Position numbers and translations under genes: made by a program
Shown: positions 1 to 41,355 of the stretch, piece by piece
Position numbering within the stretch: the first letter of the stretch is position 1
Layout: each line of letters opens with the position of its first letter
Origin: Adineta vaga
Lineage: Eukaryota; Animalia; Rotifera
Length of the DNA stretch: 64,000 nucleotides
NCBI GenBank assembly: GCA_021613535.1
Contig: CP075493.1
Location: 11,408,001-11,472,000, forward strand
Reading direction: 5' to 3'
The notes under the pieces: generated by a model
Seen by the model: only the letters and a program-made list of their open reading frames with translations
The model's database searches: none
What the model was told of the DNA's origin: nothing

Positions 1-635
1 TATTATATATATATATATCTATTGATGTTCTTTGAATAAATTTTTGCGTACTGTATTCTCATGAATGTTTTTAGAATTGATTATTGTTCCGTCTTTGAAA
101 ATAAAATAATCAAGATTAAAATTTTCTCTTAAGATTTTATTAGAGAGATTCAGACGGTAGTCTAATAAGTGAGGTAGATATAGTAACGGTGGAAGAAAAG
201 AACAAAGTATGGTACGTAGTAGGAAATAAAATCATAAAAGTATGTGTTTGCCTACATGAAAAACAAACAATATTTTCGGAGCGTTGTCGACGTTATTTTT
301 GAAGCTTTATATTTTTTGACTAGTCTGTTTTTCATCTATGAGAGAAACAGCAAAATTTCTCCGCATTTTTTGGTTATAAATTCATCATAAAAGTAAGTTT
401 TTTTCCTTATAAAAATCTTTCATCAGATCAACGCACGTATCGGAGAGGCCGCAAATTATTTGAAAAAGAGAAAGAAATTATTCGAATAATGGTTATTTTA
501 TCAGTTTTTCTGTTGATATATTATATTTGGACGAATAAGAGAGAGAGAGTTAGATACTTTTCGTTCATCGTTCAACTTAGTATTATATCATCAAGAACGA
601 AAAAAGTGTATACATCTGTATTTTAATGTTTTCAG

Positions 636-1267: not shown

Positions 1268-1284
1268 AAATCTCTAACCTGAAC

Positions 1285-1308
1285 TTATTATTATTATTAT
1301 TATTATTA
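1285..1308 (+). repeat. (TTA)8 microsatellite
   Basis: Read directly: ttattattattattattattatta. Confidence 0.9.
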
Positions 1309-2238
1309 TATTACTACTGATTGAATGATTGATTTCGAAATTTAGTTTACAAATATATTTTATCATTGTTGTTATCTTTGAAAAATGTCTGAAATAAAAG
1401 CTCTATAATCTCTTGTTCTAAGTCAGAAGAATTCATTTTGAAAAGTTTGTAAATATCCAAATGATGTTACTATTGGATGAATTAAACTTTGAAAATCTTT
1501 TTTTTACATATAGTAAAGAAGTGAGTGTGAAGATGGGTCAGAATGTCTCTTTTCTTTACTCATACCTACGCCCATCATTTTTTATTTAAATATACTCTCA
1601 GTATAAGATATCTTGAATTGTCTTCAACAATACAAATAGGTGATATAATCAGTTTTAACAAACAAATAAGAGCAACATGCCCAGAATGGTCCATAAATAT
1701 CGACGCGAGAGGCTACTAAAATATTTTGAATGAAATCTTTCGTATAAGTTTTTAGTAGACTTCAATAAATGTCTTGTACAATAAAATGATGAAGAAATGG
1801 ATTTACTAGAATTCATTATAGTCAAATGTGCGAAACTCCATAAAGAGTCATTCCCATTTAATGTCACTGTGTTTTACTAGAAATTAACCATTTTTGCCTT
1901 TCTTTAATACGAAACACATCGGACATGGTGATTGCATTAAAAATTCACTTCTTTCTTTTTCTATTTATAATTAAAGTAAAAACAATGAAATCTTCACTAG
2001 TTTACTTTCTCATCTGATCGTATTTATCAATTGAAAGTATTAGACTTGTATTGAAGTTATAGATCGCAAAATACGATGACTGCTTAAATTGTTCGCAACA
2101 AATGCGTTTAGACTTTCTTTGACTCTATGTTCATAAAACTATGAAATCAAACTCACATCTATAAACATAATTTTCATTTTATTTTAAAAATAAATGCTTT
2201 TAAAGTATATTTTGTGATGACAAAAAAGTGTCTATAAA

Positions 2239-2739
2239 TTACAGATTGAACAATTGTTTGATCTCACTTTCTGTGAACCATTTTTTCAGATTATCTGCTT
2301 CGAGAACTTGTTCTTCGGCTCTTTCATGTTCATTCACCAATTTGGATACTTTATCGACAAGTAAAGTGGCTTCGTTAATAATACTATTGAGATCTTCATC
2401 ATCGGTTTTTTTCAATTGTTTGAGACGATGAGAAAAATTCTTGAATTCAATCAACAATTGACTAAGTTGCTTGTGATGATCTTCTAAATGTGAGATATCA
2501 ATTTTTCGAGCAAGTTTAGGAAAAATCCGTTGATCTTCGATGGTATGATGATTGTGAAGATAATGACAAAATGAATGAATATCAGACGCTAAATGGTGTA
2601 GATCTGCAACGGTTTTCGCTCGTTTACATTGTTGTTGCATTGATAGAAGTGATTGTCCATGGGAACGATGAAAATAGCACATATTTTCATGGAGTGCTCC
2701 AAAGATATTTCGAGAACTCATTTGATTATTTTGATACAA
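2239..2739 (-). CDS. Hemerythrin/HHE cation-binding domain protein, intronless
   Basis: His/Glu pattern FHRSH...LHNHHTIEDQRIFP...HLEDHH...HERAEE, matching the HxxxE repeats of hemerythrin-like proteins. Confidence 0.8.
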   Translation of the reverse strand: MYQNNQMSSRNIFGALHENMCYFHRSHGQSLLSMQQQCKRAKTVADLHHLASDIHSFCHYLHNHHTIEDQRIFPKLARKIDISHLEDHHKQLSQLLIEFKNFSHRLKQLKKTDDEDLNSIINEATLLVDKVSKLVNEHERAEEQVLEADNLKKWFTESEIKQLFNL

Positions 2740-3551
2740 TGAAATTTTGCTTCATCAACGATATTTTTCACAGATATTTTTATAGTTCTCTAAAAAATTC
2801 TGCGCTGTCATTATTACGTGTTATGGTTTACAGTTACAGAACGCAAAAGAAACTTATATATGCAAATGAGAGATGACTAAGCAAGATGGCGCAATGTTCC
2901 AATCACGAATAGATGTTTTTCTGACAGACGATGTCGAAATTTCAGCTCTCTACAGTGCTGTTCTTATAATTTTGAACAGTACTGTATTGCAAACGAACGA
3001 TGAATTTGGGTATGTGCAAGTGTAAAGGCAAAAATAAATACATCAGAGACATCTGCTATTAACCCAAATGCGATCATATACACTTTTTCGCATAAGTGAA
3101 AGAGATTTAAGATTAGAAGAAAAGGTTTAGATCTTTCGTAAAAATAAATTGTCAGCAAATGGAAAAACTATTGATTGATTACTTTCTTTTATCAATCTTG
3201 CGCGATGTAGTCCTTTCTTTCGTTCTTCTTCCTTTTGTTCTTTTATCGGTACCAGTGCTCTTTTTACTTATTGGCTAACATCACGCACTATGTTACTAAT
3301 AGAAGCAATTCGAAATCTCTGAATCATTGTTTGATCATAAATGCTTATCTTCAAGCCGCTTCTTCTTAGTTGAATATAAAAACATCATCACACGTACGTA
3401 CACGATCGTATAAATATTTTCGTTTCTCTCACTTATACATCTCTTTATACTTCTCATCGAATATGTCTCAATTGATATGTCGTATTTACTTCGCAAGATC
3501 TTATAACAAGTTCGACCAGAAGAAAAACTTTTAGCTGTTTTCACTCTACAC

Positions 3552-6500
3552 ATGTCGTCGTTTCGTATTTCTTTGATATTCTTAATTTTACCGAATCTTC
3601 TCATTGCATCAGTTTCGGGTGTTTCTCCGACTGATCTACAAAATGTCGGACTTGATGATATGACGTCATTATCATTTGAGTTTTCATCTATTCTTGATAA
3701 AATCCAAACAATTAGTAAGCACGTCATTTTTTATTCTTTCAATTCTGATTTTCTTTCCTACGTATAGTTAATCAATTTCATTGTCCAAAGGAATGGACAC
3801 ATTTTGGTGGCTCATGTTATTACTTATCTAAATTACCATCAACATCAATACAAGCTAATCAAACATGTAATCTTTTAGATTCAACTTTAATGCAAATACG
3901 TCGTTCAAATGACTTCTTTTACACAACATATGTTATGAAAAAACATAATTTATCTACATTAATGATCAGTATACATCCCGATCTATTGAAAGGTAAGAAA
4001 ATGATGAGTTTCTATCTACTGAGGAAAGAAAAGGATTTCTTGTTTTAGAGAAAAGTATGATCGAAACTGTAGAAATTGATCAAAATCAATTCTATGTTAA
4101 ATCTTATGAATTGAAGAAAAAGTTAATCGATCAATTGAATGAAGCTGGCCTACGTATATCAAAACGTTCGAAAAAAATGAAACAAACGATTAAAACACTT
4201 CAACAAAATCTTGTTAGTGGATCTAATAATACAATAGAAAATAGTGAAAACGATGAATTGGCTTTAGAAGATAGAAGCGATGAATTCAAAAACATCACTA
4301 ACATTCAAAGATTATGTGATGAAATACATTGGAATATTACAAAGATTAATTCAACGCTTTATCTATTGACCACTTCTTTAACATCAAATAAAATCATTTG
4401 TTCATTAAATGAACTTCCCGCTAACATTCAATATTCATATATTTGTGAAAATGGTTTGTAATCTTGACTCTAAAAATGAATATCTTAAATCTATAATCAT
4501 TGAATATAGTATTCGACTTTTGTTTTGCAAATACTAAATGTGGCAAACATGGACATTGTGTAAATACATTATCCGATTTCAAATGTTCTTGTTCGTTTTT
4601 ATACGATGGGCTACAGTGTGAAAAAAGTAAGATTTTACTTTTCTGATTGTTAGATAACCTTTACCAATGATTTCTTTTCTAGTTTCAAATTACGGCAAAC
4701 AGATTATCATTAGTTTCATTCTTGCTTTCGTGCTTTTCGGACTATCAATGACACCAGCGCGTTGGGTTATCTTGTTTATTTGTAAATCTTGTTGTACGAT
4801 GTGTCAACATAGAAAAAGAAATAGTAGACAGAAAACAACACATGATCGAAACAAGTCAACGAGTAGATCAGAAAAAAGACGAGCTATGTAAGTTAGTCAT
4901 GTTTCATTACTTTTATTTAATAAAAAAAAAGGTTAAAATATACTGAAACATATCTTTCGTTTAGTATGACAGACAAGCCGAATCAAACCAATATTCGATC
5001 TTTCTGGATGATTGGATTGAGTATACTTTTCTTTCTGTTCATACTCCTTACAGTAACACTAACACATTATATATCATCTAACTACCAAACAATGTATCAT
5101 ACAATTCAGTTAGTAACATTATGTAAAATCATACCATATTTGCCAGCAAATAGTCTCCTGTTTTGTCCAATAGCATTTATTTTAATATTCAGTTTTTCTT
5201 GTCTTATCAAACGACAAAATCACTGTTTAGGTTTGTGTCATGGTCGACCAGGTGACATTTTGTTTTTTTTCAATACTTCATAAACTTTTTCTTTTCATTA
5301 TATAGGCTTTTTATCGCCAATTGAACCATTTCGTATAACAAATCGTTTTCCAATTGCAGCACTTTTTGGTGTATTTGCATTTGAATTCTTAAAAACATTG
5401 GAAACGTTTTTACTCCAGACAAGAAATCAATCAAATTCAAGTATACTAAGTACATTATTCAGAATATTGTGGATTATGTTTCCTTCTTGGGTAAGAAAAT
5501 CATATAATAGATCCTTAAGTGAATGAGAGTAATGATATTTTCTACTGTAGATTTCAATATTATCCGATACTTATTTCATTACAATTACGTCATACTATTA
5601 CACGACTTGTTATCTGTTTGTATGTATCAATTCATCTTATCTACACGATTATACGAGAAGGGCCGTGTGTGAGTTTTTCAAATCCAATAGGATATGGTTT
5701 ATTTTTGAATAGAACGAAAATTGGAATGGTAATTATGTCACAAGCATTGATAAATTTTTAAAATACCATTTTTTTCTAGGGATTCGATACACCATCTTTC
5801 ATTATTTTTACTTATGTGAGAAATATTCCACTTTTTATTTTACTTTCTTATCTTGCTGTGGAATTATCTGTACGTTTCTTCTATGATTCTATATATATGA
5901 CAATGAAAATGAAACAAAATTCATGTTCAACATTATCGTCTTGTGATGAATCAGAAGAATTGATATTGGCAAAAGAACATGTTACAAAACTATTTCGACA
6001 GTCTGGTCATGATAATCGATTGATCTATTCAACAAGTGCTATTATTGACAAATTAGGTGATGCTAAAAATGAGAACAGGTTATCTTACAACTGTACAGAT
6101 AGTTTTCGTTTTACCACAATGATTTTGTGTACATATACAATGGCTATTGTATTTGTTTATTACTTTGCATGTACATTCGTATTTGTATACATGTCACATG
6201 TGCATCGATTTCTTTCGTTAAAATCAATTTTAATAAGTGTAGTTATAACTCTTGGAATCGTTGGGATTCAATTGTACATTGGTCTTATCAATTATAAACT
6301 TCATAAATTACAATTATTTCGAGGTACACATACAAATATTCCATCCATAATCAATTTTCAATCGAATACAATCGGATCCAAATCGATTCCTTATTTTGGT
6401 TTCTTTGTTGGTTATACAGCATGTAGTTTCGTAATATTTTTTCATTCCATACTTTTCCTTTACTATATCATTCAATGCATATTTTCACAAACAATATATG

Positions 6501-7492
6501 TTACATCAATACTTAATAGAACTGTACCTATCCTAATTATTTATCTACTTGCAATGCTCAGTACATCATTCTTTGGAAAAACTATCCATTTAACCAATCT
6601 GAAAATATATGGATGTTTTATCTACTTGAGTTTCTTTGTTGGTAAGATTTGTTTTATTAAATCATGTATGATATGAAACAGAAAAGAAATGCATTTCTAT
6701 TAAGAATGTTTTCTCGGTTTTCCTTCATGCTTAATTCGATTGATTACATCTGCGTTTTTTAATGTACTGTACATGGCAAGACTTGATTGTAGTTTATATG
6801 GAAAATCATTCGAAAAATTCGGTAAATTATTTCAACTAATGGAAAGATGTGAACTTTTCGAAGTCTTTCATTTAGATGCTGGATTTACTGCCTATGTTTC
6901 ATATTTACATGCAGAAGTTGCTTATACAAATCCAATTATGCTTGGTGAGTTGATAGAGATGGAAAAACAAGTATATCTATTTGTTTATCTTTGTTAGTGT
7001 TTTGTTCTTCATTCTTTGATGATATTCTTCAACGACGACCAAAGCAAAGTTCGGATGGAAATGATATAGAATTAAAACTAATGACTGTGAAAAATGAATT
7101 GTTAACAAAACAAAAAACGACCTTCATGTTCGATTCAAATAATTCAATCATTACTTGCTTATCAGAACCAGAAGAAGTATATGATTATGTGAGAATTAAA
7201 AAGCGAAAGCGAAATCGTTTTCGATGGCTTCTTGCATATACACTTTCAAATAATAATCAATTGATTCAACTGAGAAAACGAGTACATATTCGTCTTCCTT
7301 CTTTACGTAGTGATGATTGGCTTGAACATTCAGTCGAAGAGAATGAAACTCCTGAATTTGTAGTGACAAATTCAAAACAAACTAAGTATAGTTATATCTG
7401 TTTGAAAAAGAATCCATGATAATTGATCATATATTCTTTCTTTTAGACATACAACATCATATTACGTTGATGATTCTGAAAATATTGAATAA
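3552..7492 (+). CDS. Multi-exon C-type lectin + EGF + STRA6-like multipass membrane protein
   Basis: Signal peptide; exon from about 3768 reads CPKEWTHFGGSCYY (CTLD); exon about 4510-4626 reads CGKHGHCVNTLSDFKCSCSFLYDGLQC (EGF); then a TM. In-frame splice across about 4888-4964 leads to STRA6-like motifs CHGRPG/LLSPIEPF, ARLDCSLY..DAGFTAYVSYLHAE..TNPIML and RFRWLLAYTLSNN..L..LRK. Last exon 7447-7492 is inferred (alternative stop at 7419). Confidence 0.8.
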
Positions 7493-7714
7493 TTCATCTT
7501 CTCAAAATATACGTGTCGGATACAACAAAAACTTCACAATTCCTTCTAATATTCTCATCTAATCACGAATCTATCTACAAAGTGTAGAAGACTGTGTTCT
7601 GCTATGAGTACGCCTAGCAATCACTTTTTTCTTTATGGCAAGATGATATGTATCCTAAAGTTTTCACATTCTCTTTTCTGATATAAAAAGAATACATGCA
7701 TGAAAAATACATGT

Positions 7715-10525
7715 TCATCCTTTAAAGTCGAAAAACGACAGTTCTTCGTCTTTGTTGACAAAGAGTTCTGTATGATCATCAATTGCATTACAGCTACCTT
7801 TGCCGATAAGAACACCATTGGAAATGAATTGTGTAAATAATAATAGAAAAGGTGAATCAGTTATATCACATCGACGAATATGAATATCGAGATGAAAGGA
7901 AGCCAAAAATGTTGAATTTGATGTTATATCAATGATGGTTTCTGTCCGTGGAAGATTGAATTGATTTCGCACAATCAATCGAACATCAGATATGGATGCT
8001 ATTTGAATATTATACGATAAAACATGTCGAAGAATAATTCTATAATTCATCAAATTCTTATCTACTGATTCAATTCTAATCTGTTCAATAGACATTGGAC
8101 GATTGAACGTATCATCAAATACACAAGTAGTTGAATTATAACATTGTTTATTTTGTAAAGGATGATTGATTGTAACCGAAAAATCATCAAGTAGACGTGG
8201 TAAGTGCTGACCTCCACGCATTTTAACTGTAATTGATGTGGATTGTAATTTAAGTGGAACATTCATAGGTAGATTTGTTAATTTCTCTACCCGGGAAAAA
8301 GATTTCGATGTATGTTTAGCATAAATAATATATGGATGAGCTTTGTTAAATGGTTGTCGAAGAACAGCAAAAGTGCAAATCAGTATCAGACTAATTAAAA
8401 GAACGATCAATATTCGACCAAAGTATTTTATACGTTGAGCGACTGAAATAAGATTTAGTGCGAGAAATAATGTCGACGTAATGACAACACTACTGATTAC
8501 TATATTAGTACGTAATCTCAATGCAGGCAAAGACATTTTGAGGAAAATCGGCATAAGAATACGTAGTAACCAATCGCTAATTGCAATTGTATGTGTGAAT
8601 GGTAAAAGAGAAATGATCAATGGTAGATACAACCAATGAGATTTCTGTTTCAAAAATGTCCATTGATGTTGTTTTGAATGCAAAATGAAGTCAACGATCA
8701 TCGCACAAAGATAAGTAGGACAGATAAAGATCGACCAAACAAGAATTATATAGAATATTCGATATTTGAATAGAATGGAAATCATCATTAACAAACAATA
8801 AATCAATAGAATGGAAAAATTTTGTTCGAAATTGAAATGAATCTTGTTCGAATGTTTCACATTGATTTCTGTAGAGTTATCTGATGATTTTCGAAGAATA
8901 CAACGATGAAGTCTATCAAACAGATGTTCACTGCTCAGAAAACCGATTAAATATGGCAAACTAAAAACATACATTGCCAATGTTACATTGCCATTCCATG
9001 CAGTAGGTCGTATCATTGTCATGACCGCTGCGAAAATGTATGATAATATAAGACCAACTATGATTGAGATGATATTCGCAATGACATAGATTATAATCGA
9101 ACTAATACGAATAAGAAATGGATTTTTGAAATAAACATAAATACAATGCGGATCATTACATGATGAAGTTGGTTTACGATGCCATATGTGATCGAAAATA
9201 ATTAAAACTATACCCATAATAATAGTCATGATAATTAGAACCCATTGAATTAGTATCGATGTTGATAATTTATATATCATTAAATATCGACCAAGAATAT
9301 CAAAATAAATCAATAGATCAGGTTCAGTCACATTTTTAGACATTGGAACATATTCTCGAAATAGATTGCGAGTTAAGATACCAAGATTTTCTCCTAAATC
9401 TTGAATAATACCTCGTTTAATTTCTGATGAATGATCAAGTACAGTATGATAGGTATAACTATCAAGCAAAAAACCGAAAGCGTATCCTAATCGAGTATTA
9501 TTTAAATACAGTACATTATAATCACTCGCCCATGGAATCCACATTGAAGTCAACTCAAGCACAACGTTAGTACGTGGTCTTGATACTCGACTATAATCAA
9601 TTACTAGCTAGAGCAAAAAAGAAAAAGAAAAGTCCTCTGTGCATAGATTATAATACTAATTAATTAATAATAAAAAAAACCTGTGATCGTGTTGTTTCAG
9701 TTAGAAAAGCCACTTCTCTACAACTTGCTGCATCAACATTGATAAAATAATCGAAATCAGATCGCCAACGATGATGAGTAGTAAATGCTTTTGCACCTTC
9801 GAGATTCGATTCTTCTCCATTCGTAAATAGAAGTATCAAATCCATCTTGGAAAAAGTTAATGTAACATCATGAACTAGATTTGAAACTAATTCGAGTAAA
9901 ATGACAACACCTGAACCATCATCACAACTTCCCGAACTAAACTCCACTATAATAGATAAAAATGAATCGATTTTCTTACATGATAGAATAAAATTTTACC
10001 TGTATCATAATGAGCACTTAACAAGAGACTTGGTATGTTTTTTTTATAGGTTTGACTTGCATTTGATATACGAACAAGAATATTTTGTAGTTGATTTTGT
10101 TTTAAATTAGTAAAATTTTGAAGTTCAATTTGAAATCGAAGATTTCGTTTGTTCATTGAATAGATACGATGAATTTGAGAAATGAGATAATCACGTGCTT
10201 GAAAATTACCACGTGTATTACTAACCCTTGATCCATATTGTGTTAAATTATGTAAATAATCTAGAGCACGTTCTTCACTAAATATATTCTTGGAAATACT
10301 TCGTGGTTTGACTGTAGGTACTGAATAGAGTATACGAAGTGCGAGTGGACCAGCAATGTTCAATAGACAGATAAACATGACCATCCATAAAATAAATTGT
10401 TTGAGATACTTTTTCGAACTGAAAAATTTTCGATTGATTTTCGTATTTGTTGTTGAGAATTCTTCATCTTCTTGAGTTGGTGTTCTATTGGATACTAATG
10501 TAATCTCTTCTACCATTTTATTCAT
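7715..10525 (-). CDS. ERMP1: ER metallopeptidase 1-like, peptidase family M28, 3 exons
   Basis: FSEERA, LLLSAHYDT, DDGSGVVILLE, LFTNGEESNLEGA, FINVDA, SDY and YHTVLD M28 motifs, followed by many TM helices. Short introns near 9947-10000 and 9610-9682. Confidence 0.85.
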
Positions 10526-11657
10526 CAGTAATCGTTGTTCTTTCTTTAACAATGAAATACTTATTACTCTTTTATTCAAGTAACTATACACATATTATAT
10601 TCTCGTTTCATCCGTTCTTTTTTTTATGACGTTGAAGAAAAGAACAACAACGATCGTACACGTGGAAAATGCCGACTCAAATAAAACATCGTAAACAAAT
10701 TTCAAGAGAAAAAATTATTCTCTCAAGGAAAAACCTATTTAAATGTGAATTGTATATGTTTCATCGGTATGCTTACTTTCCTATTATAATGCCACTCATA
10801 GAAGGAAATAATATTGGTGACAAGAAAACGAATAAAAAAATCGCAATCATTCATTGATTTTGTGCCTATATTTCTAATATTGAATGTAAATGAAATCATT
10901 ATTCACACAAAAATTGACTTAATACCAAGTGTACGCTATAGAACAAACGGATTTATCTAGGTTTTGAGTTTGAGATAAGATTCTTGTTTGTAATCGGCAT
11001 ATAAAGAGAGCTAATCAAGTTAATTGCTTAAAATACAGTTCATTATAAGATGAATTATAAAATCATATGAAATGCAGTCTTATCACGAGAGTAGACTGTG
11101 AGAAAATGTGAAAAAAGCAAACTCTCGGGTAGTTGTTCGCCGTGCGAATGGTGATTGCGCATTATGTGACAGTTGAAAGTTATAATCTATATGATTCCTT
11201 ACAAATAACAAACAATCCCATATACACATTTAGAAAAATCCTATCTTCAAGAATATCGCAGAGTGGATTATTGTATTTCAAGTTTATATGTAAAGAATGT
11301 GGATATATGAGTTCACTTGGAAACAAGATAAGCGTCTCTCGATTTGTAGCATCACCCTTAATTCAAAATACGATCTTGTAATTAATCTTACACAAAAAAA
11401 GGTTCGAATCTTTCATCTATTCTGCATATGCGTTTGAACATTACTAATAATTTTTGTCATATATTAAATTTAATTGTGTATTTGTAATAAAAAAATTGAA
11501 TATATAATAGAACTCTAAGTTAAGAATTTGGGAAGATTCTTTTATTATATATGTGTAGAAAACTAAGATTAAGTTTAAAGACCAATAATACACTATCTAA
11601 CTCCCAATATAAACCATACGAAATGAGAAATTCAGTCATTATGTATTTTATGTTTGA

Positions 11658-11960
11658 TTATGGTGTTGGAGCGACTAAAAGTGGAGTACATGCAGCCATG
11701 CATGCACCTTGTGCAGCACTACATGCTGCAGCTGCTGCAACAGTTGAAGTAGGAGTCGATGTCAGCCAGGCCCACCATCCAACAGGTCCTGTAGCTGCAG
11801 CAGCTGCAGTGGATGCACCAAATGTAAGACCTGCTGCGGCATAACAAGTAACAGCACCATAATTGCAGGCTGTTTGACATGCCGCATAAGCTAATGGTCC
11901 CGAAAAGACCAAATTAGGAAATAATAGAACGAAAATAAAGAAAACGGTTGTTCGTTTCAT
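11658..11960 (-). CDS. Small secreted Cys/Ala-rich protein (GPxAYxxCQTxCN family, familiar from fungi/protists)
   Basis: Signal peptide, then GPLAYAACQTACNYGAVTCYAAAGLTFG...ACSAAQGACMAAC. Intronless and visibly more GC-rich than its flanks. Confidence 0.8.
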   Translation of the reverse strand: MKRTTVFFIFVLLFPNLVFSGPLAYAACQTACNYGAVTCYAAAGLTFGASTAAAAATGPVGWWAWLTSTPTSTVAAAAACSAAQGACMAACTPLLVAPTP

Positions 11961-13390
11961 AAATAAATTCAGTAGTTATGTGAAGTCTAAAATACAAAAT
12001 TTAATAAATCTTTCTAATCGTCACACTTCACACGTCTCTCAATGTTTTAGAATTGAGATGGATACACTCAGATATACTACTAATTAGTCGTAATAGCATA
12101 ATGACCGATTAGTTTTATCACCATATCTAAGTTTATTCAAGTCAAATTTAAAAGCGTTAATTGTAACTCAAAAATGACTGAACTGGGAAAAAAAATAAAT
12201 CCATTGCACCATGTTATCTTATCTCTCAATAAAATTATCATAGAGAACGTGAAAAAAGAAAAAAACAGAAGAAATCAATGCTGACTTTTCAGTCAGACGA
12301 TATTTTTTCCTTCTCTTTCGTCATCAGAAGTCAACCAAACTGCGCGTGCGCCTAACTTGAAGCAATCCATCGTCCATATTTTCTTTCCATTCGTTATATA
12401 CAGATAGAATTTTCAATAGATGTCCATCTATAGCGGTTTTTACACCATTTATTAAATCTATCATCGTATTCTCTCACAATTTGAATCGAGTATAGTATTT
12501 TCAAGATGTCTTGAGATGAATTCATCTACTTTTGATTTAGTTTTAGTTATAGAATAATGTCTTAGTAGTTATGGTATTCGACATGATAAGAATATGCTCA
12601 TTACTTGATTTGGACCTCATTTTTAAGTATGATATGAAGACACTAGAAAACTATATGCAAACACTTCTTCAATAATACCCGCAGTTCAGTAATGATAATA
12701 TTAGCAAAATCATTTAGCTTACATATGAAGAAATTTCAAAAACTTGACATGATATTTGATCATCTTTGCAAAAATTTCTCTAAATCAACATATATTATCG
12801 TTAATAAGTATTGGTAATAACGGATTTAGACAATAGATTGATAAGAGATATTTTGTTTATCGACAATGATTATTTCTGATTTAAAAAAAGAATAGTCGGA
12901 AGATATCTAATAAGTAAGAATTATACAACTGATTGAAGATATTTTTTAAGTTTTAGTATAGACTCGAAGGTATGATATATATTGTTATCAGAATTAATAA
13001 AACTTTCAAAAGTGAGTGTGGCGAATGAAATACAGACAACCGCATTGCTATTCTCCGAATGCAAGGTAAATATGTTGTATACATTGTAAACTTGATAAAG
13101 AAAGCAACATGACTGATAATATATGAGTTAAATATAAAAGTAATATTATAATTTATTTCTGTTCTGTATTTCTTCAATGCTAAAAGACTGGGGAAAATGC
13201 TGTTACAAAATTATTTTTTCGTTCTGTTTAGAATGTTGTCATAGTATACGTTTCTCTTGCAAATAAGCTTGTTTTTGCTTCTACCACTAATTGTATCGTC
13301 TATTAGCAACAGAGAAAAAACCCACTCGTAGTCGTCGGTTTCTATATTGAATAAAATTCTTTTAAATTTTCACTGAAGAGAATAAATGTT

Positions 13391-16300
13391 ATGGATCGTA
13401 GTAGACGTGTTCCTAATAATCGAAAGCGTCGGCCACCAACCAAAAACCAGACAGAAGAATTAGCTGCTGCTGCTGCTGCTGCAAAACCGGAAAACTTCGT
13501 TTATGATAATCAAGATTTTCCCTCCCTATCTGCAGCTCCGGTCATATCAACGAAGAAAGATTCAAAGTCATCTACTCAGTTAAATGTACAACCAAAGATA
13601 GATGATCACGACGAAATAAAAACGCAACCATGTAATATAATAATGTGCTGTTTAAATGATTAATTTGATAGAAGTTTGATTTTCTTTAGTGGAATCGTCA
13701 AAAACTGAAGCATCGGTAACCACGAAACGAGCATCTCCATGGAAAACACCAGCAGAGCCGATGCAAGCTGTACCTTTGATGCATATTATATCTGAATGTG
13801 AAGAAGAAAAAGCCACTTCAAAAAAAAATCTTCCTACTGCATGTAAGATCTCTTTACTTTATTTTATCATGAATAACATAGGATGAACTATTCAGTGATA
13901 CTTGTAAATCAGAACTTTGTTCAATCATAAACAGGCGTTTTTCAATTTTTGTTTTTCATTAAAAGATACATCTGTCATTCAACCTGAAACTCGATTTATG
14001 ACACGTCGTGAAGATGAAATTGATACAAAATTATGTGAAATTATCCTAAATATCCATCTACGAAAAGAATATGTTTCACTTGAGCGTGTTGAACAAGAGC
14101 TTTTTGCATATTATAGAGTTCAATCATTTCGAGATCTACATGTCCACCAGCAGAATTTAAAAACATTAACTAATCTTATCCATCGTATTAAGGATGTCAC
14201 ATTTTATATGCAAATATTTGAACAAGTTTTCAATTTATGTACTTTACATGATCTCGGTCCATTGATAGCTAGATTTCTCAAACTCGAGACATACGAAGAT
14301 GCTCATTTAGGACCATTAGATGAGAATCCTGCAGTACAACGCGTCTTTAAGTATAAACCACGAAAACGTCATCAACCTATTCCGGAATTAACTTGTGGAC
14401 AAATAATAAATTCATTTCTTGTTTTCGGAGAAAGATATCATCGTAATGAACGCTATGATTACGACGCATTTCTCGACGATCTTGTTCAACAGAATCAATT
14501 ACATAATCAAAAAGAACTTGGTATTTATATTAAATCTTTTTCATATTTAATTGAAGTATGAATTTATAGAATGAACTTTAGAGAAATAACAATAGATCTT
14601 TTTGAATTATTGTAGGTATCAAGAAAAGTAGATCAAGAATGTAACAAATATAAGAAACAGATTGAAAAGGATGCACAAAGACAGATAATTCGAACAATCG
14701 AAACACGATTAGGCGAAATTCAAAATGATGTAGAAGACGAACTCAATTCATCAGCATACATCAACAAATCACCGATTGCTGTTTTGGATTATCTTGTTTC
14801 AATCGTTGACAAATATTTAACTGTACCTCAACAAAAACTTGTCCGTGATATATTGATGAAAATTCGAGAAAGTGAACTTCTACGATGTTTATTAAATATT
14901 AGTATATATTTGGGTACCATCGACGAACCTGCGAAATTCATTGATGAAATACAAAAATTCAATCGACAACAGGTGGATGAAAGTGGACGACAAAATTCTA
15001 CATCAACAAAATCGATGAATCATAGCAAAAAGGATCATCAACATACGGTCAATATGCAAAATGTAAGTTCTATTAATCATTTAGAATTGATCGAAAATAT
15101 CTTATATTTTAAGTCTAACACAACGATAGATTTGTCACGACCAACTATTGAGACATCATTTGAAAATTCGTCTTCACGGTCATCATTTGAGAATAGACCA
15201 AAAATATCGATAAAACAACTCTGTTCAGACATGTTCAAAATTCTGGTACGTTTCGATACAGTTCTTACTTTGAAACAATTATTTGATTTAAAAAAATATC
15301 TTTGTAATCAATATTCATTACATGATTTTTCCGAATTCGGTATTGCTAACGGCGATGATAAACCACTAGATATAATTACTTTTTTGCATACTTATCGTCA
15401 AGAAATCGATCCAAATGGAGAATTACTGATTTATGAAACGAATGCATCGTCAACAGGTGATCGACACGAACTGTATTCATTTGTTAATCAATTAGCAGTG
15501 ATTAACACTTGGAGAGAAAAACAACAAGGTGGAGAATTTTCGACAAGTAGAGAAGTTCCTTTGACTAAAAATCAACTGTCGGCTATTGGAAAAGCACTTC
15601 AATATAAATTCGGTGAAACTTTAACAAATACGCGTAGTTCTCAAATTATTAAAAAAGCAAAAAATCAATTTCATAAAGAACCACATTCAATTATCCAGTA
15701 AGTATTCTATCACTTATCTATAATTGTATCTGCGTTTATTTCTATGGATAGTTTCGAAGAATCTTTGTTAGATGAAGTTAATCTCAATCGTCTTGGAATA
15801 TGTCCACCATCACTTCTTGTTGATGAATCTCAATTATGTAAAATTATGCTTCAATGTCCGATTATGGATGATTTATCAACCTGGTTACAATGGTCCGATT
15901 TCTTTCAATCGAGATATGGTTCACTAAAAGCATTTATCGCTCGAAAAAAAGAAGAATTAGATTGTCTTCTTTTACTTGAAACATCAAATCATGAACTTTT
16001 ACGTCTTCCGATCGATTCTTCGCTTGATAAATTTGTAGAGGAATTAGAGAAAAGAAATATTCGTTCAAGTGTCGGTCATCTCTGTTCGATTATTATGTGT
16101 GAATATGTACAAGTCAATCAATTACCTAAAACTATATATCAACAAGTGATGAAAACATGGTTTATTGATCTTCGATCATCTGCTCAATTAGAACGTGATC
16201 GAAAAGAACCGATGCAGTATATTATGGAATTTATGACCTATTTACCAGGATTAATTGGTCAATCACGAATTGTTCAAGAATTAATACTTGATCCATTGGA

Positions 16301-31495: not shown

Positions 31496-34400
31496 ATGTT
31501 CTCACTACTTACCTACTTATTTCTATTATTGATGCCGCATCTGCCAATGAACAATGCCCAATTTCATCTATACCAGACGAAATTTGCAGAAACTGATGGG
31601 GATTATGATTGCTTGGATCACTATGCGGCACATATGTTTTCGAGTATTCTGTATGGGAATATAAATCGACAAGAACATTATATAATTCCATATTGTCGGC
31701 GAGATCAATTACACGATGAATTTACGGCAGAACAAGATCAAATTCAGTCATTTACATTTGAAACTTTAAAGGAACGAAATGTCAGTAGTGATCAACTCTA
31801 TCAATGGTCAGCACCACTCGATCTAGTTGAAGAATATGAAGCTTTTGTTCTAAATAATGAAACAAGAAGCAGTTTGATTCGCTTTTACAATTGTTCTTTG
31901 TCAAGACGTTTTGGTCAATATTGTCAATATTTCTTCAAAGGAAGAGTAAGTAAAATATATTTAGTAAATCAACTATGGCTGTTCAACGAATATTCTGTAA
32001 TAAACCAAAATGATTCCATATTAATACAGAAATTTTACTTTCAATTTATTAATTTTTTTATCGATTAGGAAGAAATAATCAATAGATTTTAAAGTCTTTT
32101 TTTTCCAGGAACTATCAAGCCAACTATTCGATGACATTGTTGCAATGGCTCATCAGAATACTAGGCCTACAAAGGGAACATGTTTCATACATTTGAAATG
32201 TACTCGTACTTTTAATATAACTTGGTGTCTTGATTGGCGAGAAATTTGTGATGGTATCGTTCATTGTTGGCCGGATGCTATTGATGAACAGTATTGTGAT
32301 GAGCTGGAAGCAAATGAATGTGATATCAATGAATATCGATGTCGAAATGGCCAATGTATTCCGAAAGATTTCCTACTTGATAATCATGTAACAGTAGATT
32401 GTCTTGACGGAACAGATGAATCGACTGCACTTGACGTTTCGAGGAATACAATATGCATGAGAAGCAATGGAATTTTTATATGTGAAGACACTACTTGTTC
32501 ACGTACTTCAATAATCTGTTGGCCGGTAGATTGTCGTCGTACACGATCATGTCGAGCAGAAAACAATAAGATCTTTGGTCGTGCAATTCTGTCACGTACG
32601 GCAAATCGTCATATCTCTGAGAAATGTTGGTTGACGATGATTTGTATAGTGCAGATGTCTCATATTGTCTCTCTGGTAAGTTTCTGATTTTATCATCTTT
32701 TCTTTTTCATATTGCATAAGAATTCGTCTTTCCGAAGTATTTGAGTCGTTTTCGCATACAGTTTCGTTTCCTCGAAAATATATAGGTGAAAGCACGGAGC
32801 ACACGATAAAATGTCAATATAATCGTTGTTTTTGATCTAATTTTGAAATATGTAACAAATATTTTGCTTTTTCAAATTGATTATAGAACGATCCACACTA
32901 TACTGATTTTCTCAACAATACGTGCGACGATTTTTGTGGGAAATCTAGAGGTAAATATTGCATACCCAAAATTCGAAAATATTGTCCGCAATCATTTGAA
33001 TTTCCTGCTCAACCAATCAGTCATGGTCATCTTTATCTTGTCTATTCTTGGAATCGGACAGTTTCTGATGAAATAGACTATGTTTTACCTGAATACGTAT
33101 GTTATAGCGCAGAGTTATGTGGAAATTTATCTGGAACAGTTTATCTCCAAAAAGAGAGTGATAATAGTAAACTTTCCTGTCTTCATATCAGTATTTTGAA
33201 TGACACGAGCGCAGTTTCGTGGATAGCAAAGATATCACAGCTAACAGTGCGCTTTTTCGGATGTGCTAAGATAAATAATGAGAGAAAAGATTGCTCTATA
33301 GAGAATATGTTTCGTTGTGGTCAAAAATGTATTTCGAAACATCGTCTTGTCGACTATAGACGAGATTGTATGGATAATAGTGACGAAGCGTTCAATGGTA
33401 GTTGTAGTATTAATAATAATCATCATCGGACCATTTGTACGATTGCAAAGAAAAATATTACACAATGTATCGAAACTCCCTTACATCCGGAATCAACTAT
33501 ATCGCATGGAAAACAAGTTGGAGGTTGTTTAAAACCCAGAGGACTGATTCATTTTCCGACTCTATGTGATGGTTTCGTTGAAAATGAATATCGAACATTC
33601 GATGGAACTATCGAAACTGATGAAAGTAATTGTGATCAGTGGTTATGTGACAATCAATATACACGTTGTGATGGAACATGGAATTGTTTGAATGGAATAG
33701 ATGAAGCAGATTGTGCAAATGCACTTTTTTCACTTTGCAAAGCTGATGAACATCCTTGTTTATCACCATATAAAGCTGAATTGTTTTGTTTGTCTATTAA
33801 TCAAAGTGGAAATGGAATTATAGACTGTTTAGGAGCAACAGATGAACGTCACATATGCCGAAAGCTAGATAGTCAATATCATTGCTGGAATCATACTGAT
33901 GAAAATATACTGTTGAATTCGTAAGTTTATTTCATTTCAATATGTGTTTTCTACAATTTACAATTTTATTTAGAACAATAACAGATCTCAAACAAGAAAA
34001 ATGTATTGATCTCGATGAATTATGTGATGGGAAAATCGATTGTCCAATACATGGTGATGATGAAATGGGCTCATTATGTCAAGAAAATCGCTATAGAGAC
34101 GATTACTGTATGAATTTCGCGAGTGGTCTCGGCCATCTTGGAATCTTAATAGAATCTACTCTATTATGTCAGTTGGAAGAATCAATAAAACTGGCTTCAT
34201 CGAAATTAAGTAATACTTTAGCATATTTTACATTATCAAATTATAGCGTTCGTCCACCTTTGGAAACCAAGACATTTCTTTCAAGAAAGCTTATGCATTC
34301 TACTTTCGTTAAGGAGCATGATTCGAACTTAATAAATGAACGACAGGCAAATATACTACTCGAAGATAACTGTCATGGAGGAGTTCCTATATATATGTTA

Positions 34401-36788
34401 CGCAATGGATCAGTCGAAGCATCCAACAATAATTTGTACATAAGATGCTTATGTCCACCCAGCCTCTATGGTCCTCAATGTCAATATCAAAATCAACGCC
34501 TCAGTGTAATTTTACAAATCGGTGCGCTTAACAGACGTAATCCATTTATTTTCATTATCTTTCTTTTGGATGATGATAGCGAACAAGTTATTCATTCGTA
34601 TCATCGAATATCCTATGTATCAATTCGCGATTGTGCTACAAAATTCATCTTTAATCTTCTTTATAATGCACGCCCTAAGAATATCAATCGAAATTCATTT
34701 ATCCGTATTGATGTTTTTGAAACAATTGGTCTTATATATCGTGCAAGTTGGAAATATCCTATAAAGTTTCCATTTTTACCTGTATACACACTTGCAATCA
34801 AATTGACGATACCTCCCCAACGCATATCATCTTTTATTCGTTGCTCTTTAAAGTGTGGAGTTCATGGTCAATGTGGCATCTATATGAATACAAATGATTT
34901 CTTTTGTCACTGTAAAGCAGGATGGTGGGGCCAATTCTGTACGAATCCATATAAATGTCATTGTTCTTCTGATTCACTTTGTGTAGGTTTTACTTCATTA
35001 AATAATCGATCGATATGTGTGTGTCCACTAGAAAAATTTGGATTACGGTGTTATCTGTCGAACCGAGTTTGCCAGTTAAAAGATGTGAAAAAGTGTAGAA
35101 ATGATGGTCTGTGTATACCTCGTGATCGTCGAATTCTTATCGATCAAGATACAATCTGTTTATGTCCAGAAAGTTATTATGGTGATCGATGTGAGAAAAA
35201 TCAAACAAGACTTGCTATTTCATTTGTTTCATTCTCTTCAATACCTGCGCATATTCATCTTCATTTTATTTCTGTTCCACCTCGTCGAAGTCCACATGAG
35301 CGTGCAACAACTTTCGTTAAGGTTCCACTTGCTGACACATCCGTCAGTATCTATTGGAGTACTCCATTTAATATTATTTTTGCTCAAATTGATGATAATA
35401 TTTACAGACTTCTTGTTCAACCGGATCATGTACTGTTGCCCATTTATTCTTTATCAATCAAATCTTCTCAACGATGTCCATTAGTTCGAGAAGTGTTAGA
35501 CGAAACAACTGCATCTTTTCCACCGATCGTAAAATTCTATCATGTGCCATGTCAAAAACAACCAGAATTGGAATGTTTTCATGATAATGAACTATATATC
35601 TGCCTCTGCACGCATGATCGTCGTGCTAATTGTTTAACTTTTAATTTTCAAATGGAATATAATTGTCAAGGATTTAGCTACTGTGAAAACGGTGGTCTTT
35701 GCTTTCAAAACAATGCTACTTGTCCAGTAACAAGTATATGCGCGTGTCGACAATGTTTTTTTGGTGATCGATGTCAATTTTCTTCGCAAGGATTCGGTCT
35801 ATCACTTGATGCCATTCTCGGCTATCAAGTTCAGCCATATGTTTCTTTCTGTGAGCAATGGTCAATAATTAAAATAGGTACAGGTATTACTACTATCATG
35901 TTAGTTCTCAGTCTTGTTAATGGAATACTTTCGATAATAACGTTTCTTAGCAAGAAAACTCGACAAACCGGTTGTGGTATCTATCTACTTGTTGCCTCGA
36001 TAATATCTGTTCTAACGATGATTATGTTTGCATTGAAATTTGGTTTTCTGGTATCGAATCAGATGCATGGCAATAACAACGGATTTAATTTATATGTTCA
36101 ATGTATTTCAATTGATTATTTGCTTAAAGTATTGTTACTAATGAATGATTGGTTGTATGCTTGTGTCGCAATCGAACGATCACTCACTGCTATTCGCGGA
36201 ATTAGTTTCAATAAACAATTTAATCGAAGAGTAGCCAAATGGATTACTTTGATTCTATTGCTTTCTGTTTGTGGTTCGTATATACACGAACCTTTGTATC
36301 GTGAATTGATGGAAGATGAAACAGAAAAACGAATCTGGTGTATTGTTCGTTATCCACCCGCATTATCCGTCAAACTGACAACTTATACATCAATTATAAG
36401 TATGATTCATTTTCTTGGTCCTTTTTCTATTAACATAATTTCTGCATTGATTATTATTTTTAAAACAACTCAAATGCATTGGAAAGCTCACCAACAAAAT
36501 AGATATTATAAACAACTTCATAGGCAATTTCTCAAACATAAACATTTAATTATCACTCCTTTAGCTATCGTTATTTTGGCACTGCCTCGTCTAATCTTTG
36601 CATTTGTTCTCGAATGTATGAAATCTGCTCGTGATTCTGTATCACTCTTTGTAGTCGGCTATTTCATTTCATTTATACCACCGTTACTTACCTTTACAGT
36701 TTTCATTTTACCATCAAAAACGTACATGAAAGAATTCAAAGTGGCGATTCGATCGATACAAAAGATCAAAATGCGATTATGTCAGTAG
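31496..36788 (+). CDS. LDL-receptor class A repeat / EGF / class A 7TM receptor
   Basis: Signal peptide; LDLa motifs CLDWREICDG..DE, YRCRNGQCIP..DCLDGTDE, RCDGTWNCLNGIDE; several EGF modules (C.C..G..G..C); 7TM with CVAIERS. Introns at about 31946-32108, 32676-32886 and 33922-33972. Confidence 0.85.
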
Positions 36789-37648: not shown

Positions 37649-40600
37649 TTATTTGCTACTAGGAGTTTGTTGTATAATTCGTCGCTTTTTTCTGGCTGCT
37701 CGTTGCGCGGTGGCCGTGGACATTGCACAGAATTGGTGAAACTGTATGGCATTTTCTAACATACGTTGCGCAAATTTTTTCAAATGGATGTCTTTTTCAG
37801 CAAGACTTAGATGCGCGAAGCGTCTCACAAAACAGCTCACGTTTTCTTTCTGTTCATTCGTTAGGTCACCTGCACGATTGAGATCTCGGTGTTTGTTGGA
37901 TTTATTCTTGCGACGATTTGGGACTTCTTCTGGTAGAAGTGGTAAACGTGATTTATTTTGCTGCATGTCGATATCAGGAACAGAATACAACTCAGAAAAT
38001 ATCTGAGATATACCGTTGAAATACTCTATTTTTGGAGTACATTTTCCACAAGTGTATTCATCATCAACAGGAAATTGATTCATTAGATCACGCGAGGATG
38101 GACGTTTAATAGATCTTTTAATGATATTAGACTCGAATATATTTTAAAATTTCATTGAAAATGCTTGTGTCGATAAAAGTGATTGATCATTTACACCTAG
38201 TTGGTGCAGCATATACTCAGGCATAGGAAAAATTACATCATTAATATCGCCACTGACTGAAAATGGCGGTAGATTCTGTTTCGTAGTATTGGTTGGTTTT
38301 TTGAGCCAACGCTCAATCCATTCGAATCCTTATTTGAAATTTTAAAAAAAGGTATATTTTGAAAGGAAAATAGAAAAAAATTAGTTACTTCTTCGTATGC
38401 TGTTATCTTCAGCATTGTTATTACTCTGTTGTTTCGTAACGATTTCTTGATTTTGTTCATCTAATGCATGTTCTTTGGAGTCAGTGTCGTTTTTGACGTG
38501 CTGTAGTTGTTCAATTAAAACTGCCATTTCATCGTCTTTTATATGACCGATTTCCATGAGAGTTCGAATTTTTTCATCATACTTCGAACGCCTTCGTTCT
38601 ATTGCTAATATGTCTTCAGTTTTATCGCCATCGATTTCATGACGATCAGATTTTGACTTGATCGATCGTAACTATATGAACAATCGCAGTGTTTGATAGA
38701 CAAAAAAAAGTTTTTTTTTTCTTGAATATTTACTATTTTAAGTAATAAATTATCAATTTGTAGATTGAAATAGTGTTCAGAGCCGAATAATGGTAAAAAC
38801 AATTTATCTCTAAAAAGCTCTCGTTGCCAACCGAACAGTGGATCATTTCGAATTTTTAATAACAATACTGGCTTTCCAGTTTGTAAAGCATATCTTGCTT
38901 CTTGTTCGCATAGATGACTTTCATAATAATATTCACTGATGCAAAGAAGAATGCATTCCGATTTATTCGTCTGAGAAGAACTATCACGTAGTTGCCCATC
39001 AACTATTGGCTCAGCCCATACAGTTAAATTCTCTTCAGTAAATCTTTTAATAAGTTGCTGACATCTTTTTGTATCTTTTTCACAATAGCTCAACATCATA
39101 TTGTAATTATTGACTGGTACAGAACTTGAACGTCCTATTTTCGACATGCGTAAGTATTTTGCTGTTGCTAGATTGGAAAGTACATTATATCTTTGTTCAG
39201 CTTCGACAATTTTGTTTATGAAACCGGTTAGTTTCAGTTCTTTCTCTGTTTGATTGAGATCAGGTAAAACACATTGATCATGACCATATTGATAAAATTT
39301 ATTTATCGTTTGTTGATCCCAGTATTGAAAGATTCCATTTAGATTTGTTACTTTCGATGAGCTTGTAAAACGCTTTAAATAATTGTTTATCTTGTTTTGA
39401 CATCTCAATAAATCTTCATCTATAGATGCGAGAATGGTAGTCTTAATAACTATACGAAATACTAGTATAAATGTGCTCATGATTGTACTGACATTTAATT
39501 TACTCGATGCCACCCACTCCAGGTGTATGTAGCCATTCTTTGCCTCTCGAACGAAAGTAAAGAAATGACGATGTATAGATATTTGTTCTGGAAGCATAAT
39601 GAACGAAATATTCAGTTGTAATTTTTTCAATTGTATTTGCTGGTGTGTTGAAACAATCATTTCTTTTGCGAGAATTTCTTCATCTCCACATAAATTAGAA
39701 ACAGCAAATGCTATTGATCTTGTACTTTGATCTTGTATTGCGTATTCAATAGATTTAGAAACGAATATCTGTACTGACTTTCGTAATTCACTAACACTAT
39801 TGATCAATGATAGTGTTATCCAGTTTGAAAAGAGAATCCGTTTACAACTCAGCTTTCCACCGTTTGTTTCTGTGAACTTTGCTCCTACTGGAGTTGTAGA
39901 AGTGCGTTCATATTGAAAAGAACCTGCGCGTTCGATCACACTCTCTTTCAATCCATTTGTCGTCATCGGAATGACTATCACATCCGCCTAAGCATATGAA
40001 AGTAATACATTTTACTAGAAAGACTAAACTTACTTTTTGCAATGCAATATCTCCCATTCGGATTTCGATCGATGCATTTCCTATAGGAACTTTTCCAGAT
40101 ACATTTGGAGAGAAAAGAAAATTATCGACTGATAAGGCTGATGTACTTGAGGACAATGCTTTTGGTATGGTGTAGTACTGCGATTTCGTTCTTAGTTGAG
40201 TTGAAATTGGACAACAATATTTATGAGCGATTTGTTTTATGTGTTTTTCTGCTATTTCTTCGATGTCTTTAGGTAATGATTTACTGTTAAAAGTTATTGA
40301 CTTCGAGTTCGATAACAATTGGGCAACACATGGTTCAATTTCATCTTTCAAATGTGTCGGTGCCAGAAATTCATTTGATTCTAAGTATAATTCTACACCA
40401 AATTCGTCATATTTTTTTTCTATATCTGTTAATTCCGTGCGATAATTCCTGTAAAGAAATTCCGTCTAGATGAAGATCAAAAATCGATATTTTAATGTCA
40501 GTTTAAAAACAAGTCAATTATTTACTTGATATTTATCCAGTAAAGTCAGTTTAAACATTGTTCCATTGCATTTAGCAGCTACTTTCAACAACTGTTCCTT

Positions 40601-41355
40601 CAATTGATTCACCGTTTTGTAATAACCGAATAGAATGACTTTCCTATCTACTTGCTTTAACTTCGAATAATTGTGATCGAAAGAAGCAGTTATATCTCCC
40701 TTCTCTGTAGCTTCATCAATTAATTCTTCGAACTCATTCCTATTTCGCCTGGAATATTTAGAAGGTATTGGTAATGATATAGTTTCTTGTATAATCTTGT
40801 TTTCAATGATTTTGTTTAGATCTTTCACATGAGGCACATCCGATAGTTGTCGAGAAAGATAATATATTTTCAACGAATATTCAGGATCTTCTTCACATAC
40901 AGTAAATAGATGTTGAACTTTCTCATCAATAATTTTCTGCAGACAGCGTAGATTTTCTTCGTTTGTTGAAGTGTACTGTAACCATTCTCTAACTAGAATA
41001 AAAGATAATCTGTTTGATACGTATTCATCATTAATAACAAACCTTTATCATTGGTGAACGTTTGTGATGGCATTGTTTCAAATAATTTTTCGATAGAATT
41101 GGAAACAGCTTGTTCTATTTCTATTCTATTCTCTGTCGCGTCTAAGACATGAATTCGATAAACATCGGAAACATTTTCTGAACTCCATCGGTTTTTTATT
41201 AATTGCTGAGGAATGATGGCAACTTGTACGGAGAGCAAGTTTTGTATATATTCTTGTGCGCGTAGACAAAATTTTGAATTTTGAAAAAACTTCACCTGAA
41301 TTGAATCGTCAATTTTGTAACCACCATCATTTGAATTTGTAGATTCGGCTTTCAT
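37649..41355 (-). CDS. PARP14/PARP9-like KH-type region + macro domain + TIR (TIR_2) domain protein, multi-exon, with no PARP catalytic domain
   Basis: KH-like segments (KVILFGYYKTVNQLKEQL; LKLTGFINKIVEAE). Macro: SIEIRMGDIALQK|ADVIVI...GGKLSCKRILF...SIAF. TIR about 39110-38735: YNMMLSY...CILLCISEYYYESHLCEQEARYA..KPVLLLK. Downstream exons continue; in-frame TAA at 38144-38146 precedes in-frame ORF 38083-37649. Confidence 0.75.

Follow-up and report, generated by a model that had tools for sequence, protein, structure and literature searches.

Macro-PARPs and TIR enzymes constitute the two main arms of innate immunity that consume nicotinamide adenine dinucleotide (NAD+), and a gene of the bdelloid rotifer Adineta vaga raises the question of what such a protein does when the output domain of one arm appears to have been swapped for that of the other on the same frame. 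The gene, I4U23_003711, occupies positions 41355-37649 of the minus strand (ATG to last stop) in a 64-kb window, by which we mean the whole stretch of DNA analyzed, C1:11408001-11472000 of a haploid assembly of 100.8 Mb in six contigs; the window is AT-rich, with ~31% GC. A sequence-only reading of this window had delimited exactly the same span, 37649-41355, and had taken its product for a PARP14-like KH/macro scaffold with a TIR at its end where a PARP domain would be expected, which would sense nucleic acids or ADP-ribose and cleave NAD+ in cis. The explanation that we favor, and hold to be a little better than evenly probable, is that the gene belongs to a bdelloid family built on a macro-PARP frame in which the C-terminal module of WWE and ADP-ribosyltransferase (ART) domains was swapped for a TIR_2 domain, that the products of this family function as scaffold-driven TIR NADases, and that the present copy is weakened or decaying.

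Gene architecture and kinship with the macro-PARPs

The chain encoded by this single gene begins with four KH-like repeats and a macro fold; another KH-like module comes next, and a TIR_2 domain and a conserved tail complete it. Because one open reading frame (ORF) of 458 codons (39981-38605) runs from the second strand of the macro fold through the TIR, these two domains do not belong to separate genes; independent gene predictions from five other bdelloids, namely Rotaria socialis, R. magnacalcarata, R. sordida, Didymodactylos and A. steineri, place these parts in one chain as well, as the earlier reading had supposed. Moreover, residues 6-1113 of our spliced model align end to end with residues 6-1133 of the R. 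socialis protein P0018 (1135 aa) at 45% identity. This spliced model, joined locally with an X at the in-frame stop considered below, served for coordinates and BLAST, and the database searches used the exons or the public protein P0225 (I4U23_003711; 977 aa, annotated as 'hypothetical protein'), which is identical to the gene-model translation.

Two blocks of P0225 were folded with AlphaFold2 (AF2) using family alignments, residues 1-395 and residues 380-835, with mean predicted local distance difference test scores (pLDDT) of 78.5 and 82.5, respectively. The macro region is modeled with a pLDDT of ~90, and VIA searches match it to macro 2 of PARP14 (Z 20.0, rmsd 2.8, 168-171 residues aligned), macro 2 of PARP9 (Z 19.9) and macro 3 of PARP14 (Z 17.9). 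The best Foldseek matches are likewise macro 2 of PARP9 (E 8.4e-9) and the macros of PARP14/15, and a family profile run against the PDB reaches a PARP9 macro at E 0.003. The macro domain recognized from the letters is hence borne out as a fold by structure prediction, even though it is invisible to Pfam: the Macro model (PF01661) has no match in this protein and matches a single member out of 30 in the family, at E 0.054. The TIR_2 domain, on which the same reading had also settled, is detected directly by Pfam (PF13676; 35.0 bits against a cutoff of 28, E 2.3e-8), as it is in 28 of the 30 family members, and is the best-conserved domain of the protein, with 73% identity to A. steineri and 55-57% to Rotaria. 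Its model (block residues 317-450) matches the TIR of Hydra TRR-2 in VIA searches with Z 16.4 (rmsd 2.5, 119 residues aligned), along with those of RPS4 (Z 15.4), MyD88 (15.3), SARM1 (13.6), ThsB (12.3) and AbTir (12.3).

The macro-to-TIR profile of the family further matches bdelloid macro-PARPs of 1200-1424 aa at E 7e-33 and 9e-29, in which Pfam recognizes, in order, PARP12-like CCCH, Macro, WWE and PARP domains. The module that follows the macro fold is common to the rotifer macro-PARPs P0063 and P0079, and in a shape search of the ESM Atlas PARP9 clusters, some with members bearing KH_PARP14_8, align over the macro and post-macro module together (269-306 residues). Pfam finds no PARP or WWE match in this protein or in its relatives P0018, P0024, P0032 and P0022, and the same models match P0063 and P0079. 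Because the macro and post-macro region is common to bdelloid proteins that end in WWE-PARP, the TIR appears to have replaced the ART module: it stands where WWE-ART stands in the native macro-PARPs, and this comparison of sequences supports an effector swap on a macro-PARP frame, in line with the initial description of a PARP14-like scaffold ending in a TIR. The parts of the gene and its neighbor of the same family are as follows.

41043-41355, minus: exon 1, with the ATG at 41353-41355; KH-like repeat 1 and the start of repeat 2 (gene model, equal to P0225; alignment with A. steineri P0016 begins at residue 1; AF2 elements E13-H93)
40526-40992, minus: exon 2; KH-like repeats 2 and 3 (AF2 units at residues 97-170 and 171-245), with a 50-nt intron upstream and a 60-nt intron downstream
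40034-40465, minus: exon 3; KH-like repeat 4, a linker (residues 356-395, pLDDT <50) and the first macro strand with G-D-I, the macro beginning at ~40084
39504-39987, minus: exon 4a; main body of the macro, residues 405-565, with Asp 406 at 39984-39982 (VIA, Foldseek, profile against the PDB)
39450-39503, minus: in-frame intron of 54 nt (ortholog alignment, AF2 pLDDT)
39130-39449, minus: post-macro alpha/beta KH-like module, equivalent in position to the KH after the macros in PARP9/14 (AF2 elements H215-H308 of the C-terminal model)
38734-39114, minus: TIR_2 domain, residues 696-822, extending seven codons into exon 5 (Pfam, VIA, PADLOC)
38899-38901, minus: codon for the putative catalytic residue, Glu 767 (family profile alignment to the ROQ1 TIR)
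38389-38671, minus: exon 5; the TIR ends here and gives way to a charged segment of the tail, probably helical, which is conserved in both Rotaria and A. steineri
38147-38328, minus: exon 6 up to the premature stop, holding the near-invariant tail motif at 38275-38219 (alignment A2)
38144-38146, minus: in-frame TAA, where the annotated protein P0225 ends (ortholog alignment)
37649-38143, minus: ancestral C-terminal tail of 164 open codons, with a TAA at 37651-37649 (aligns to the C-terminus of R. socialis P0018)
38132-38194, minus: hypothetical in-frame intron of 63 nt over the TAA (GTAAAT...CGAG), unlikely (gene model; coding in orthologs)
41803-43355, plus: head-to-head partner, a paralogue of the P0045 clade (tblastn, profile A4)

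The GT..AG introns of the gene are short (50, 60, 46, 54, 62 and 60 nt). The fourth of these, the in-frame stretch at 39503-39450 (GTAAAT...TATAG), is kept unspliced in the public annotation (P0225); we treat it as an intron because its 18 residues are absent from Rotaria orthologs and paralogues in the alignment, and because it forms the sole long low-confidence part of the structure model (AF2 pLDDT 32-42).

The N-terminal block was less easily placed. In the model of residues 1-395, a beta-alpha-alpha-beta-beta-alpha unit occurs four times, and the best real match, found with residues 172-244, is the KH domain of N4BP1 (VIA Z 8.0), followed by Nova-1 (Z 7.5), KH3 of PCBP2 (Z 7.0) and several KH domains of vigilin, FUBP and KSRP. 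In the same search, unrelated generic alpha/beta sandwiches score alike to the KH domains; Foldseek returns no match below E 1e-3 for this model, and Pfam scans of the single exons and of P0225 find no KH or Macro match in this protein. Among 24 N-termini of the family the commonest Pfam matches are KH_PARP14_2, _5 and _8, all weak (best E 1.9e-5), and none of them falls in this protein. Of the KH-like segments proposed at the outset, the four-unit topology hence finds a counterpart in the AF2 model, whereas Pfam is blind to them here and generic sandwiches fit equally well; judged from the model, 'KH-like' appears to be a reasonable label that stops short of proof.

A search with the macro-to-TIR profile among 1.84 billion representatives retrieved 57 clusters at E <1e-30, and every named full-length relative comes from Rotaria, Adineta or Didymodactylos. 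Within the databases searched, and as judged by sequence similarity, the family is confined to bdelloid rotifers. Its paralogues P0024, P0032, P0048 and P0090 add an N-terminal SAM domain. Orthologs are already present in databases as uncharacterized 'TIR domain-containing proteins', and no paper dealing with a KH/macro/TIR protein, or with TIR-macro genes of bdelloids, turned up in full-text literature searches, which agrees with the initial impression that the architecture is undescribed. The closest relatives outside the family that share only the TIR are P0085 and P0087, which carry seven tandem TIR_2 domains and then a WD40 propeller. Rotifers also possess a NACHT+TIR_2+ART cluster with 68 members.

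The premature stop and the truncated partner

The TAA at 38146-38144, from which the sequence-only reading had deduced a tail truncated downstream of the TIR, is present, and orthologs read Arg or His in its place, inside a conserved coding stretch of 21 residues. Because the orthologs code through these 63 nt, the alignment identifies the TAA as a true premature stop relative to them rather than the original terminus of the gene. All parts through the TIR precede it, as does a tail motif of ~19 residues (38219-38275, minus strand) that is nearly invariant across the family and sits just before the stop; its invariant columns in alignment A2 are N938, P941, F942, G946, N949 and F953. The 164 codons that follow the TAA are still open and show 54% identity to A. 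steineri P0005, against 57% for the tail before the stop. Since the post-stop tail is open and as conserved as the pre-stop tail, the stop is probably recent, or allelic, or bypassed. Our first gene model had removed the TAA with a 63-nt intron at 38194-38132. This intron was rejected, given that the stretch is coding and conserved in orthologs and that its acceptor would be GAG, while the other six acceptors of the gene are TAG or AAG; the variant in which the stretch is spliced out as a newborn intron that rescues a nonsense mutation strikes us as quite improbable.

The partner paralogue starts ~450 bp upstream of I4U23_003711 on the opposite strand and comprises KH-like repeats and the first half of a macro. 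It matches residues 1-472 of R. sordida P0045 in tblastn at 41-59% identity and nothing beyond, breaking off in the middle of the macro, and it is matched by profile A4 at E 3e-61. ORFs of a rotifer-specific F-box/LRR-like orphan family come after it, up to ~44889, which leaves two readings of the partner, a truncated pseudogene and a chimera. The head-to-head pairing of a gene of the I4U23_003711 type with one of the P0045 type is kept in three species, A. vaga, R. sordida and R. socialis. In R. sordida the pair consists of P0227 and P0045 on contig CAJOAX010003039.1 (237-18558), and is followed by a third TIR_2 gene (1107 aa) and then by a gene for an ankyrin-ART protein (PF01129); in R. socialis the same pairing occurs on a contig stretch at 1-13865. 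At least three more head-to-head KH-like/macro/TIR pairs are found in A. vaga on contig 3, at ~14.258-14.271, 4.255-4.263 and 4.864-4.872 Mb, which gives four such pairs in this A. vaga genome with the present locus included. Single loci with the N-terminal frame occur on C4 at 7.62 Mb, on C2 at 2.22 Mb and on C1 at 5.6 Mb.

Within the window we found neither the third TIR gene nor the ART gene of the R. sordida cassette. Because the partner is truncated, these two genes are absent and the target gene bears a stop, the locus looks like a decaying copy of the cassette of the family. Its other neighbors are of different kinds. On the plus strand at 33942-36788, adjoining the 3' end of the gene, lies an unbroken ORF of 948 codons with EGF-like Cys-rich repeats and then a seven-helix region resembling G-protein-coupled receptors, and on the minus strand at 44923-46840 are two neighboring ORFs, one kinase-like of the EcKL/APH type and the other cytidylyltransferase-like (CTP_transf_like).

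These observations bear directly on whether the gene is a young pseudogene, functionless today, in a copy of the cassette that is falling into decay, a prospect that we hold to be unlikely. An in-frame TAA stands at a codon that is coding in the orthologs, the partner stops in mid-macro before unrelated F-box/LRR-like ORFs, and the remaining genes of the cassette are missing from the window. Nevertheless, this is a single defect in 1124 codons, and all the domains through the TIR, together with the invariant tail motif, are encoded ahead of it. The near-equal conservation of the tail on either side of the stop likewise speaks against a pseudogene, the assembly is haploid such that the other allele may be intact, and the public annotation lists the locus as a gene.

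Candidate activity and its regulation

We propose that the family arose from a macro-PARP frame of the type found in the antiviral enzymes PARP9 and PARP14 through replacement of the C-terminal WWE-ART module by TIR_2. The degenerate PARP14-like frame would serve mainly as a protein-protein scaffold, as has been reported for the KH-like domains of PARP9, DTX3L and PARP14 (PMC11080071), and would probably work with the paralogue encoded head-to-head. Such an assembly could bring TIRs together, leading to cleavage of NAD+ and then either to signals of the cyclic ADP-ribose (cADPR) type or to depletion of NAD+, as part of an immune-type response. At this locus, a recent premature stop would have removed the last 164 residues and the partner is truncated, and so this copy has probably been weakened or is in decay.

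The case for an enzymatic TIR turns on Glu 767. The motif S-x-x-C-x-x-E is present as first described, with the Glu codon at 38901-38899, and the TIR profile of the family aligns its C-x-x-E onto the C-L-E-E of the plant ROQ1 TIR (E 2.5e-4), the last Glu of which we take to be the catalytic residue of ROQ1 (E86); the position that had been assigned to the glutamate thus holds in the alignment. The family profile was needed for this, as phmmer with the TIR alone against the PDB returned only noise, and SARM1 was not among the PDB sequence matches of the profile. All close orthologs have Glu 767, and so do 20 of the 30 family members; Ser 755 does not vary, and Asp 709 occurs in 29 of 30. The domain also weakly resembles defense TIRs, with a PADLOC match to ThsB at E 4.5e-6 and, in relatives, matches to TIR-Ago and SAVED-TIR. 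A 2026 preprint on catalytic animal TIRs (bioRxiv 10.64898/2026.04.20.719644) reports Glu-dependent production of cADPR by TIRs of diverse animals, rotifers among them, and for one TIR of R. sordida also a depletion of NAD+. Those of its rotifer TIRs that were compared come from proteins of 291-763 aa, far shorter than those of the present family, and six UniProt accessions of family members were not found in its supplementary tables so far as these were available. Taken together, the sequence features give a NAD+-cleaving activity of this TIR about an even chance, or slightly better.

Several points weigh against a functioning scaffold-driven NADase. Ten of the 30 family members have lost the Glu, and catalysis is accordingly not a trait of every member. 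In plant TIRs, SARM1 and AbTir a Trp stands four residues before the Glu and is taken as a mark of active TIRs; here that residue is Leu 763, which is variable across the family, with no aromatic in its place. The immune role is a putative one, suggested by domain kinship and gene clustering. Finally, this particular copy may have ceased to function, given its premature stop and truncated partner.

The first two of these points, together with a model that matches the adaptor TIRs of MyD88 and Hydra TRR-2 as well as it does enzymatic ones, would also fit a TIR that acts as a non-enzymatic adaptor, as classically for the TIRs of MyD88 and the TLRs, in a protein that is solely a signaling scaffold: a third of the family has lost the Glu and has been retained all the same. 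We consider this rather unlikely in view of the retention of the Glu in every close ortholog and in two thirds of the family, and of a TIR_2 type with similarity to ThsB, TIR-Ago and SAVED-TIR. The Glu-dependent synthesis of cADPR by diverse animal TIRs, among them rotifer ones and that of TLR4, as reported in the same preprint (bioRxiv 10.64898/2026.04.20.719644), points in the same direction.

Turning from the effector to the frame, the proposal made from sequence was a sensor in which nucleic acid or ADP-ribose, bound by the KH-like repeats or the macro, switches on the TIR NADase in cis. In its favor, the macro fold is intact, and the macros nearest to it are readers that bind ADP-ribose, namely macros 2 and 3 of PARP14 and macro 2 of PARP9; it has the G-D-I that had been noticed (residues 398-400), and Asp 406, which would contact the adenine, is kept in 27 of 28 sequences. 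Single chains with Macro and TIR_2 exist in bacteria, and the KH1-KH2 and KH8-WWE-ART fragments of PARP14 bind RNA (PMC10450202). Against it stand the features of the pocket. The NAAN, GGG and GxG loops are missing, as had been cautioned; loop 1 is five residues shorter than in macro 3 of PARP14, and loop 2 has a deletion relative to macro 2 of PARP9 and the rotifer macro-PARPs and lacks glycine throughout the TIR family, whereas the rotifer macro-PARPs keep it as G-x-G-x-x-G. Because the Gly-rich loop 2 is lost and loop 1 is short, canonical binding of ADP-ribose by this macro is unlikely on sequence grounds, and the failure of the Pfam Macro model on 29 of 30 members agrees with this. Sensing of nucleic acids is also doubtful because there is no GxxG loop in residues 1-400 or 566-700, which cover all the KH-like parts, and the KH-like block is acidic (net charge -10). 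Both ligands of the original proposal thereby lose much of their appeal, and a sensor of this kind operating in cis is, to our mind, decidedly unlikely.

A more speculative variant, to which we give slightly less credence still, is that the pocket was remodeled rather than lost: the macro would bind a nucleotide made by the TIR itself (a cADPR isomer or an ADP-ribose conjugate) or an ADP-ribosyl mark left by a pathogen, with the head-to-head paralogues acting as a pair of sensor and executor. Were this so, the protein would be an animal single-chain counterpart of the logic of Thoeris and of the paired TIR receptors of plants. That the gene model is an artefact uniting a macro and a TIR from different transcripts or genes has a vanishingly small probability beside the 458-codon ORF at 39981-38605, the five independent bdelloid predictions and the end-to-end identity to P0018.

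With the scaffold-driven TIR NADase as the preferred explanation, the family allows one to ask what a KH/macro frame of the PARP14 type adds in targeting, assembly or ligand sensing, apart from the transfer of ADP-ribosyl groups, and whether animal TIRs beyond SARM1 and the TLRs work as regulated enzymes. The preprint that reports animal TIRs, rotifer ones included, to be catalytic (bioRxiv 10.64898/2026.04.20.719644) makes the family timely, and the orthologs from Rotaria and A. steineri are better subjects of study than the copy truncated by the stop.

Comparison with known systems

The human macro-PARPs comprise an in-line array of KH domains, then a split KH that receives the macros, then another KH and finally WWE-ART (Suskiewicz et al., PMC10450202). 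Like the vertebrate PARP9, PARP14 and PARP15, the rotifer protein has a putative type I KH-like array, a macro and a further KH-like module ahead of the output domain; unlike them, it has a single macro, no RRM and no WWE or ART, its output is TIR_2, and both the Gly-rich loops of the macro and the GxxG of the KH domains are lacking. PARP14-like expansions with other added domains are known from oysters and cnidarians, none of them with a TIR output (Aravind and colleagues, PMC8195603). The bdelloid macro-PARPs (A. vaga UJR08142.1, which is P0063; Rotaria P0079; A. steineri P0103) are homologous over the macro and the post-macro module (E 7e-33, 28% identity over ~290 residues), but start with a PARP12-like CCCH region, end in WWE-PARP and have retained the glycines of loop 2.

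Among animal TIR proteins, SARM1 and its C. elegans counterpart TIR-1 likewise are cytosolic and have a TIR_2-type domain with a Glu at the catalytic position (VIA Z 13.6-13.9), and the SAM domain of SARM1 recurs in some paralogues of the rotifer family. In contrast to SARM1, the gene described here has neither ARM nor SAM, and its regulatory frame is PARP14-like.

In bacteria, too, a macro fold and a TIR_2 share one chain, in the Macro+TIR_2 proteins of two Atlas clusters (144 and 1234 members), and their existence means that the pairing as such is not new. They differ in their length of 360-430 aa, in macros that Pfam recognizes and in the lack of a KH array, and the shape search aligned only their macro. 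Because the rotifer macro is of the PARP9/14 type, the rotifer fusion appears to be independent of the bacterial one. Thoeris, in which a TIR protein, ThsB, is paired with the macro-containing ThsA, had been offered as the precedent; it holds up insofar as the rotifer TIR is weakly ThsB-like (E 4.5e-6), but it is not the sole precedent for macro and TIR, given the bacterial single chains.

Lastly, the paired TIR-NLRs of plants such as RRS1/RPS4 differ from the rotifer genes in that the latter have no NB-ARC or LRR; cooperation within the rotifer pairs is putative, and the partner is truncated at the present locus. What they have in common is the arrangement itself: the rotifer TIR paralogues, too, occur as head-to-head pairs, some of them with and some without the catalytic Glu.

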